Assembly: GCF_052425735.1 (NCBI RefSeq)
Contig: NC_135769.1
Span: 26,226,001-26,290,000, forward strand
Reading direction: 5' to 3'
Source: Oculina patagonica
Lineage: Eukaryota
Length of the DNA: 64,000 nt
The translations under genes were made by a program, and so were the position numbers. The notes below the pieces were generated by a model that worked only from the letters and a program-made list of their open reading frames with translations, made no database searches and was not told the DNA's origin. Position 1 is the first letter of the stretch. Every line of letters starts with the position of its first letter. This document shows, one piece after another, positions 17,557 through 19,494 of this stretch.

Positions 17557-19494
17557 ATGATCGCGAGCTTGCTTAAACCTGCAAACACTGCCGAGCATAC
17601 TACTCCAAGTAAAGACGTTTCCAGTGAAGTCTTTATGCCGAAAGACACAATCGATCAGCCATTCGACGTTGTTTTGGTTGTCGAAGATGGAAACGAATTC
17701 AGAGCTCACAGACAAGTTCTTTCAGAGGCAAGTCCTTTCTTTGAAAAGCTGCTGAACAGCGACATGAAAGAGTCTCGAGAGGGAATTGTTCGGCTTGAAA
17801 TGTTTTCTGAGTCTGTTATGGGTAATACACTGGAGTTTATCTACACCAGTAATGTTCAGATATTGACTGAAGACAATGCCCGAGACTTGATCGTTATTGC
17901 CGATTTTTTATTCCTTGAAAACTTAAAAACTCTTGCTGAGGGAGTTCTACTACAAAAATTGAACGCTTCAAATTGCATTTCTATTTTCTACTTTTCCGAA
18001 AGATATCAATCCCATGAACTTGTTTATAAGGCCAAAAAAATCATCCTTGCAAATTTCACTACTTTGTTCGCAGGCGACAGGAAAGAGGGTTTGAATATGT
18101 CGAGCAAACAAGTCCAAATGTGGATTTCAAGTGATGAAATAAATGTTGCCGCCGAAGAAGATGTGTTCACGATCATCCTAACATGGATTGATCATGACAA
18201 TAGCAAGCGAAAGAAATATTTCGCCGAGTTATTTCGTGAAGTTCGACTGGTTTATGTATCGCTTGACTTTCTATGCAGTAATATCGCGACAAATGACCTT
18301 GTGAATGACAATGAAGACTGTTTGGCTCTTGTGGAGAAAGCTATGAGGTTGATTGAGTCTGGCAACTACCACAATCTCCCGGTCGCACCTAGAAAGTGGC
18401 TTGATGTCCCAGTTATCGTAGCCTGTAGTCAATTGAAGGGTCGTCCTATTCAGTGTTATTTTCTTCGAGAGGATCGGTGGTACGATTTAGGTAAGATGCC
18501 ATCTGATTTCTTCCATAGCTATCTTGCCCCTTGTCATGGTAAGATCTACGCTTTACAGACTGCCTCTCCTAACCGAGAATGCCGAATGGTAAGTTTCAGT
18601 CCATATACTAACAATTGGACGTTATTACCATGCATAGAAGACAGAGACGTAAAGCAAATATTTGTTGCAAATGAAAATGAAATGTATGCTTTAGTAACTG
18701 AACCATATAAGTACCATGGAATGCGATCGAGCATGCGCCGCCCTCTCGACAAAGAGATAGAATTCTGTGGCAAGGAGAAACATATTTCATTTATCACGAA
18801 GTACAAACCGGAATCAAACTCATGGGAAGACATTTCTTCTTTTGATCACATGAATTTAAGGGAAAATGTTTGCATTGTAGCCAATGACAGTTCTATCTAC
18901 TTTATTGGTGGCGAAGAAAAGAGTGGCACAGATTTCAAATTCCTCACTGATGTTGAGAGGTATGATCTTCGAAAAAACCAATGGGACAAAGTAGCTGACA
19001 TTCAAATTGCAAGGAGCTGGGCTACTGGTGCTGCGGCGAACGGAAAAATTGTCATTGCTGGTGGAGTTTATGACATGGGAAGGAGCGCAACAGGGTTGCG
19101 ATGTGAAGTGTTTAATGAAACAACAAATGAGTGGCACTTTATTAGTAATTTTGGTATACATCCTCAGTTTACACCCAAACTCCTGTCCGTTGATGACAGG
19201 CTGTTTGTTGTGGCCACAGAACCTCAGGAGTCAGTTTTATACCAAAGAAAGGTCGAATGCTATGATCCTGACAACGATGAATGGCACCAAAACACTTGCA
19301 TACCACTGACCAAAGTGGATCAAGTAATTACTTTTTGTTCAATGAGAATTTTCAAAGGATTCCTCGACACGCGGGAAACGGCATCTCTTTCCGTCCATTC
19401 TTCGTGCAATTTGTCTTCGTCGCGCTTACACGCAAAGAATAGAAAACAAGCCTCTATGAACGAGAGAAGGCAACGCAAATGCTTCATTCTGTGA
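17557..19494 (+). CDS. K3: intact intronless BTB-BACK-Kelch protein (645 aa) ending in polybasic CaaL (RRQRKCFIL)
   Basis: Uninterrupted ORF with all domains and one linker unit. Confidence 0.95.
   Translation: MIASLLKPANTAEHTTPSKDVSSEVFMPKDTIDQPFDVVLVVEDGNEFRAHRQVLSEASPFFEKLLNSDMKESREGIVRLEMFSESVMGNTLEFIYTSNVQILTEDNARDLIVIADFLFLENLKTLAEGVLLQKLNASNCISIFYFSERYQSHELVYKAKKIILANFTTLFAGDRKEGLNMSSKQVQMWISSDEINVAAEEDVFTIILTWIDHDNSKRKKYFAELFREVRLVYVSLDFLCSNIATNDLVNDNEDCLALVEKAMRLIESGNYHNLPVAPRKWLDVPVIVACSQLKGRPIQCYFLREDRWYDLGKMPSDFFHSYLAPCHGKIYALQTASPNRECRMVSFSPYTNNWTLLPCIEDRDVKQIFVANENEMYALVTEPYKYHGMRSSMRRPLDKEIEFCGKEKHISFITKYKPESNSWEDISSFDHMNLRENVCIVANDSSIYFIGGEEKSGTDFKFLTDVERYDLRKNQWDKVADIQIARSWATGAAANGKIVIAGGVYDMGRSATGLRCEVFNETTNEWHFISNFGIHPQFTPKLLSVDDRLFVVATEPQESVLYQRKVECYDPDNDEWHQNTCIPLTKVDQVITFCSMRIFKGFLDTRETASLSVHSSCNLSSSRLHAKNRKQASMNERRQRKCFIL

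Follow-up and report, generated by a model that had tools for sequence, protein, structure and literature searches.

Can a BTB-Kelch protein carry a lipid anchor of its own? Although substrates of cullin-RING ligases include membrane-bound proteins, we know of only a handful of cullin-RING receptors with a lipid anchor (FBXL2, FBXO10 and RhoBTB3), and BTB-Kelch proteins, the largest class of CUL3 receptors, are regarded as soluble, with recruitment left to other factors. The question is raised by a stretch of 64,000 nucleotides from the stony coral Oculina patagonica (NCBI RefSeq assembly GCF_052425735.1, contig NC_135769.1, positions 26,226,001 to 26,290,000; hereafter the window), which is a birth-and-death tandem array of ~10 intronless BTB-BACK-Kelch genes lying on both strands (tblastn of one copy, K3, against the window). 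From the letters of the window alone, an earlier reading (the sequence-only reading) had proposed that the encoded proteins end in a Ras/Rho-style polybasic tail with a CaaL prenylation signal (Cys, two aliphatic residues a1 and a2, Leu), a tail that it did not know from canonical KLHL proteins. Its core idea, a CaaX prenylation signal plus a second membrane signal on BTB-Kelch adaptors, has strong comparative evidence in its favor, but CaaL is not the main signal of the family and only two of the ~10 window copies are intact. The observation of the tail and its evolutionary conservation are solid, and sequence comparison strongly supports a real, selected CaaX prenylation signal on these adaptors. 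We consider it likely that the intact members are CUL3-type adaptors held on a membrane by the prenylated CaaX box together with a basic patch or a palmitoylated Cys.

A six-frame scan of the window recovered eight polybasic tails of the form C-a-a-L-stop, each with the sequence, and at the place, that the sequence-only reading had given (Table 1). The stretch 19440-19494, for example, is the 3' end of the K3 open reading frame (ORF; 645 residues, 17557-19494, + strand) and reads ..NRKQASMNERRQRKCFIL-stop. A single instance of such an ending is unremarkable, C-x-x-x-stop being found 204 times in the six frames of the window. Nor can the eight tails be counted as independent observations, a treatment that we rejected: the tails and ~150 nt of their 3' flanks are mutually alignable, and since the flanks align too, the eight tails are copies of one ancestral tail and represent one event. 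For the same reason no independent chance test is possible within the window.

Conservation was followed in three sets of database homologues: the 120 best at 90% clusters, the 113 of them that are full-length, and a wider set of 231 full-length sequences. A C-x-x-X end was found in 90 of the 120 best and in 88 of the 113 full-length closest homologues (Cys makes up 2.9% of residues overall), while in the wider set Cys occupied the fourth position from the end (-4) in 132 of 231. Among the 88 box-bearing homologues, a1 was V (28), F (24), L (20) or I (7) in 79, a2 was I (73) or V (12) in 85, Lys preceded the box (-5) in 77, and the six residues ahead of the Cys held on average 2.75 Lys or Arg, as compared to a background of 12%. 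The features of a prenylation substrate are present: Cys at -4, aliphatic a1 and a2, an X that specifies the enzyme, a flexible upstream segment and a second membrane signal. With the CaaX-bearing members anchored at the C-terminus, mean pairwise identity was 0.55 in the box and 0.54 at -5, and upstream of these it was 0.15 (-10 to -6), 0.10 (-20 to -11) and 0.09 (-40 to -21). Thus K-C-a-a-X was kept while the linker diverged past alignment, which argues that selection acted specifically on K-C-a-a-X. Proteins without the box mostly terminate shortly past the propeller: the median distance from the motif at the end of the propeller to the C-terminus was 34 residues in proteins with the box versus 15 in those without it.

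On a tree of the 231 full-length sequences (last 45 residues left out), 117 CaaX members fell in a 156-leaf clade (support 100), 12 in its 38-leaf sister clade and 3 among 32 more basal or outgroup sequences, with a minimum of 34 changes between CaaX and none. An exhaustive HMMER search (50% representatives) found the box to be common in relatives above ~40% identity and rare in representatives at ~30%; in a more divergent subfamily (query P0235) it was present in 31 of 65. The named members come from Oculina, Pocillopora verrucosa, five Acropora species and two Montipora species and so represent both major stony-coral lineages, and within Oculina the family is apparently dispersed over at least seven chromosome-sized contigs. 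A splicing artefact of gene models was considered as the source of the tail and rejected: homologues (e.g., L002) are contiguous genomic ORFs, and K3 and K7 are single ORFs. Separately, two distant Oculina BTB-Kelch proteins outside the window, P0300 (KLHL7-like) and P0222 (KLHL21-like), end in CCQIL and CAIT; a terminal Cys box may occur on further coral BTB-Kelch lineages.

The lipid to be expected depends on X: Leu directs the protein to geranylgeranyltransferase I (GGTase-I), while Met, Ala, Ser or Gln directs it to farnesyltransferase (FTase). In the 88 box-bearing homologues X was M in 59, L in 10, A in 9 and V in 5, and CVIM was the third commonest box (11 of 88). With X mostly M or A, the family is mainly predicted to be farnesylated. 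On the other hand, the window cluster belongs to a subclade of 13-15 leaves (support 96), 9 members of which have X = L, and around it lies a 111-leaf clade in which X = M prevails (55). The subclade is thus predicted to have switched to geranylgeranyl; between L and non-L the tree requires at least seven changes. The CaaL (geranylgeranyl) signal of the sequence-only reading therefore stands for the small subclade of the window cluster but not for the family, whose predominant box, CaaM/CaaA, is of the FTase type. In humanized yeast, geranylgeranylation by human GGTase-I was complete for CIIL, CTIL and CVIL, and farnesylation was complete for CVIM, CIIM and CLIM, for which geranylgeranylation was an alternate outcome; CFIL and CLIL are not among the sequences there (PMC11152559). 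CIIL, CVIL, CVIM, CIIM and CLIM all occur in the coral BTB-Kelch family.

A CCKC/CYKC subfamily had also been singled out, as one that may be palmitoylated in addition. The extra-Cys form does exist, 10 of the 88 box-bearing homologues having a second Cys within four residues (intact KCKC-a-a-X), but all three window copies of this kind (K1, K4 and K5) are broken. The tail alignment traces the CCKC/CYKC tails to 9 nt (GCAAATGCT) with the Lys-Cys codons that were duplicated in tandem directly before the CaaX box (9480-9515, 28506-28541 and 36662-36697).

The box sits on a protein with the makeup of a ligase adaptor. Pfam BTB, BACK and Kelch repeats were found in K3, K7 and K1; in K3 the BTB domain (PF00651, E-value 1.9e-19) covers residues 34-134 and the BACK domain (PF07707, E-value 4.6e-21) residues 140-241, with some but not all Kelch blades detected. 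An AlphaFold2 model of K3 built with 80 homologues (mean predicted local distance difference test score, pLDDT, 86.9; predicted template-modeling score 0.82) shows the BTB-BACK helices, a six-bladed propeller made of ~26 strands (residues 283-599) and, up to about residue 605 where the fold ends, a short helix; the last 40 residues are disordered (pLDDT below 50 for 617-645). Its best full-length structural matches were KBTBD2, KBTBD4 and KLHL22 bound to CUL3, i.e., adaptors of CUL3-RING ligases (CRL3), while its propeller superposed on the Kelch domains of Keap1, KLHL3 and KLHL17 with template-modeling scores (by target) of 0.71-0.77. The alignments with the 30 best Swiss-Prot matches (KLHL3, KLHL2, KLHL20, KLHL17, diablo and KLHL40b) reach to K3 residue ~600, a point no more than a few residues from the C-termini of those proteins. 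Thus the linker and CaaX box form an appended extension that canonical KLHLs are without. Within the last 20 residues of K3, seven are basic and one is acidic.

The predicted CUL3-binding side of the protein was recognizable as well. The K3 BTB-BACK region aligned to the KLHL11 and KLHL3 crystal constructs with solved CUL3 complexes (E-value about 1e-29), and K3 residues M70-K71-E72 fell on the F-S-E of KLHL11, the phi-x-E position, which is the CUL3-contact motif of BTB domains in KLHL-CUL3 structures; M70 and E72 are at least 90% conserved among the 80 homologues. A cullin-binding module and a C-terminal prenylation box are thus present in one polypeptide at the sequence level, and K3 and K7 are predicted to encode CUL3-type substrate adaptors. 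The same features bear on the alternative that the proteins are prenylated but serve as membrane-tethered scaffolds or actin-binding Kelch proteins rather than as ligase adaptors. CUL3 binding is here a prediction from sequence, the partial detection of Kelch blades by Pfam leaves room for another role, and some BTB-Kelch proteins do have non-ligase roles; however, the BTB and BACK domains and phi-x-E are conserved and align to partners of solved CUL3 complexes, and within the protein constraint is strongest on BTB-BACK, with ratios of nonsynonymous to synonymous substitution (dN/dS) of 0.28-0.40 as compared to 0.47-0.74 for the propeller. We therefore hold a non-ligase role to be quite unlikely.

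Several observations weigh against a lipid-anchored adaptor: i) about a quarter of the close homologues have no box, P0029 and P0033 stopping directly ahead of the Cys (...APERK) and P0060 having Tyr in its place, so that the predicted anchor is dispensable for some members; ii) the hydrophobic a1 and X of C-a1-a2-X would also fit a class II PDZ ligand; and iii) eight of the ~10 window copies are disrupted. The second point suggests that the C-terminus might be a protein-binding motif, either a class II PDZ ligand (hydrophobic at positions 0 and -2) or a C-terminal degron, instead of a lipidation site, and the consensus [VFLI]-[IV]-[ML]-COOH is indeed hydrophobic at both positions. Yet the most conserved residues are the Cys at -4 and the Lys at -5, neither of which class II PDZ recognition requires; the allowed X (M, L and A, then V, T and I) is the prenyltransferase set; and the recurrent extra Cys (KCKC) and basic patches are classic second membrane signals (PMC9988375). 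A protein-binding ending is on these grounds highly improbable.

The third point would be explained if the window were a pseudogene graveyard, in which decaying recent duplicates merely inherited a shared tail with no present function. The frameshifts, stops, truncations or insertions of the eight copies fit such a picture, as do 3' untranslated regions that are conserved as much as the tails and a dN/dS of 0.6-0.76 within the young K1/K4/K5 group. Against it, K3 and K7, the only copies with an uninterrupted ORF through to the tail, are intact at 645 residues, with a dN/dS of 0.49 between them (0.40-0.49 among K3, K7, K4 and K1, at a dS of ~0.4-0.5); the box is kept in hundreds of diverged homologues with unalignable linkers; and assembly error may account for some of the single-base breaks of frame in the repeat arrays. 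Purifying selection acts on the intact copies, and a graveyard without function is an unlikely account of the tail.

Table 1. Tails, gene copies and repeat arrays of the BTB-BACK-Kelch family in the window (positions count from the first nucleotide of the window)
Feature	Position	Strand	Evidence
K1 tail, RRQPKCCKCLIL-stop	9501-9515	+	six-frame scan
K3 tail, RRQRKCFIL-stop; CaaX box C-F-I-L plus stop codon	19480-19494	+	six-frame scan
K4 tail, RRQRKCCKCLIL-stop	28527-28541	+	six-frame scan
K5 tail, RRQRKCYKCFIL-stop	36662-36676	-	six-frame scan
K6 tail, KKRKQRKCFIL-stop	41415-41429	+	six-frame scan
K7 tail, KKIRQQNCFIL-stop	47707-47721	+	six-frame scan
K8 tail, RRQRKCFIL-stop (NERRQRKCFIL-stop)	51776-51790	-	six-frame scan
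K9 tail, RRQRKCFIL-stop (KKRRQRKCFIL-stop)	59865-59879	-	six-frame scan
K1, main ORF 7204-9156; tail RRQPKCCKCLIL-stop in a different frame, open only from 9063	7204-9515	+	
K2, two fragments (residues 145-255 and 244-524), no 3' end	10726-13810	+	tblastn
K3, intact single-exon BTB-BACK-Kelch gene, 645 aa, ends RRQRKCFIL-stop	17557-19494	+	ORF, Pfam, AlphaFold2
K3, disordered C-terminal linker, residues 606-641, with polybasic patch NRKQASMNERRQRK	19372-19479	+	pLDDT, ends of Swiss-Prot models
K4, ORF 25925-28447 of 840 aa with nine 26-aa repeats; out-of-frame tail RRQRKCCKCLIL-stop, its frame open only from 28416	25925-28541	+	
K5, full-length, one in-frame stop (37622-37624), four 26-aa repeats, tail RRQRKCYKCFIL-stop	36662-38896	-	
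K6, 5'-truncated, frameshifted pseudogene; stop 16 codons ahead of the KKRKQRKCFIL-stop end	39435-41429	+	
K7, the other intact copy, 645 aa with its ATG at 45784, ends KKIRQQNCFIL-stop	45784-47721	+	ORF, Pfam BTB/BACK/Kelch
K8, BTB-BACK and first propeller half (57557-56155), then second half and tail (52432-51776)	51776-57557	-	
K9, frameshifted copy (63821-62076) and detached tail piece (60101-59865); in-frame stop 20 codons ahead of the end	59865-63821	-	
78-bp repeat array of K1	9089-9463		
78-bp repeat array of K4	27784-28489		
78-bp repeat array of K5	36714-37024		

How would a lipid-anchored adaptor of this kind work? In the mechanism that we propose, the Cys at -4 would be prenylated, with geranylgeranyl by GGTase-I in the window cluster (X = L) and with farnesyl by FTase in the majority of family members (X = M or A); -aaX would then be clipped and the new end carboxymethylated, presumably by RCE1 and ICMT, whose presence in corals is assumed from what is, to our knowledge, the universality of this pathway in eukaryotes. 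The lipid and the basic patch, or a palmitoylated neighboring Cys in the KCKC/CCKC variants, would tether the BTB dimer to a membrane on its cytosolic side, where the variable propeller would present membrane-proximal substrates to CUL3-RBX1. Since BTB domains dimerize, an adaptor would have two anchors. How far the propeller reaches above the membrane would depend on the disordered spacer. In K1, K4 and K5 the spacer is longer through a 78-bp tandem repeat (26 residues, SPSAQSSRDLSSLRLQAENTKQAEMT-like) of 4.8, 9.0 and 4.0 copies, respectively; this array serves as a spacer of variable length that separates the propeller from the predicted lipid box. Lipid attachment, residence on a membrane, binding to CUL3 and the choice of membrane and substrates are all inferred, and plasma membrane, phagosome or symbiosome as the site of action is speculation.

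A lipid-anchored cullin-RING receptor is a known kind of protein, but a BTB-Kelch scaffold with such an anchor is undescribed in the literature searched, and the coral family is unusually large. No prenylated BTB-Kelch or KLHL protein turned up in full-text literature searches; one coral paper matching the search concerns KCTD7 and not the BTB-Kelch family studied here (PMC12630909). FBXL2, FBXO10 and RhoBTB3 are functional analogues of the coral proteins and not homologues. FBXL2, a receptor of the CUL1-based SCF (CRL1) ligase, is geranylgeranylated at CVIL, and its C417 and C419 next to the box are palmitoylated; its CaaL box is needed for membrane localization and substrate engagement, and its lipids control which membrane's substrates are degraded (PMC9988375). 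The cysteines near the box give FBXL2 a second, reversible lipid signal, and CCKC-LIL, CYKC-FIL and KCKC-a-a-X share this layout of residues. However, FBXL2 combines an F-box with leucine-rich repeats on CUL1 and is a single conserved gene, whereas the coral family is BTB-BACK-Kelch, mostly CaaM and greatly expanded. RhoBTB3 is the only RhoBTB with a CAAX motif, which contributes to its Golgi localization (PMC4931677). It resembles the coral proteins as a BTB-domain CUL3 adaptor with a C-terminal isoprenylation motif that contributes to membrane localization (PMC4931677; PMC3812982). In place of a Kelch propeller, however, it has tandem BTB domains and a Rho-like ATPase domain, and its CAAX comes from Rho ancestry, while that of the corals was appended to a Kelch propeller. 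FBXO10 is reported as a geranylgeranylated SCF receptor at the outer mitochondrial membrane (PMC11042265). It shares with the coral proteins the action of a prenylated cullin-RING receptor on substrates of a specific membrane, and differs as an F-box protein on CUL1 that is not homologous to the coral family.

Two further comparisons concern the two ends of the coral protein. With the hypervariable regions of K-Ras4B and Rho it shares a disordered C-terminus, a Lys/Arg patch and a CaaX box (K-Ras4B has the box CVIM and Lys at -5), but these are small GTPases, whereas the coral basic patch is shorter and its cargo is a dimeric protein of ~70 kDa per chain. With canonical KLHL/KBTBD proteins (KLHL3, KLHL11, KLHL20, KBTBD2 and KBTBD4) it shares the BTB-BACK-Kelch architecture, the fold and the phi-x-E position, but these have no linker-plus-CaaX extension and are ~20-24% identical to the coral proteins.

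The coral adaptors are probably tethered to membranes, judging from their tails, and if a whole BTB-Kelch family has conserved an anchor of the Ras type, CRL3 activity would be compartmentalized in a new way. The family also offers a natural experiment, in which one scaffold is found with anchors that vary in type (farnesyl or geranylgeranyl), in the extra Cys (present or not) and in spacer length. For coral biology, this family, which is expanded in the lineage and evolves rapidly, is of note because it is predicted to act at the membrane interface that deals with symbionts and pathogens. Stony corals might even possess a large, fast-diversifying repertoire of lipid-anchored CUL3 receptors that surveys the cytosolic face of membranes such as those of phagosomes or symbiosomes, as a form of intracellular recognition and defense or of symbiosis control, although we regard this extension as rather doubtful. 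If true, each receptor would join a conserved half that docks to the ligase, a propeller that varies, and a tether that can be tuned by the lipid (farnesyl or geranylgeranyl), by a palmitoyl Cys (present or absent) and by a spacer of 6-270 residues.

In sequencing runs guessed to be RNA, the fraction of sampled 31-mers that was present came to 0.49-0.62 for 17400-19700 and to 0.57-0.75 for 19330-19640 (tail, stop codon and 3' flank), which is compatible, weakly since the run type is a guess, with an unspliced transcript through the CaaX codons. Logan contigs were considered as proof of transcription and rejected: they have no poly(A), and their ends, identical in 17 runs of one study, fit assembly-graph breaks as well as mRNAs.

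The lesions of the broken copies differ. In K1 and K4 the frame change falls within the 78-bp repeat array, while the in-frame stop of K5 stands at the nearly invariant Trp of KPESNSW. In K8 the two halves are separated by a ~3.7-kb non-coding insert, and a frameshift lies near 56850. The K8 locus is the source of the GenBank model ACROYT_G038611 (P0058, 438 residues), which joins 57557-56814 to 52348-51779 across a predicted 4.4-kb intron (56814 to 52348; GTGAAT...CAG pair) that bypasses both the frameshift and the insert, and which reads ten out-of-frame residues (SAVTSRQMTS) ahead of the donor. Comparison of the model with the locus found no support for the intron being real, and the model is probably a predictor's rescue of a pseudogene. 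Within the AT-skewed insert that splits K8 lies a 48-bp tandem repeat of 3.6 copies (54806-54979). Past K6, an (ATA)26 microsatellite (41535-41613) starts ~100 nt after the stop, in place of the 3' flank common to the other copies.

Other elements are interspersed with the Kelch genes. Directly upstream of K1, two overlapping ORFs (3103-6530, + strand) encode a Ty3/gypsy-type retrotransposon pol with reverse transcriptase, ribonuclease H, integrase zinc finger and integrase core. A short ORF between K6 and K7 (42912-43430, - strand) matches reverse transcriptase weakly (PF00078, E-value 1.1e-5) and probably represents a retroelement in decay. Midway in the Kelch array, a 543-residue ORF (31785-33416, + strand) combines a filamin repeat with NHL repeats; neither RING nor B-box was detected in it by Pfam, and it resembles the C-terminal half of a TRIM-NHL protein.

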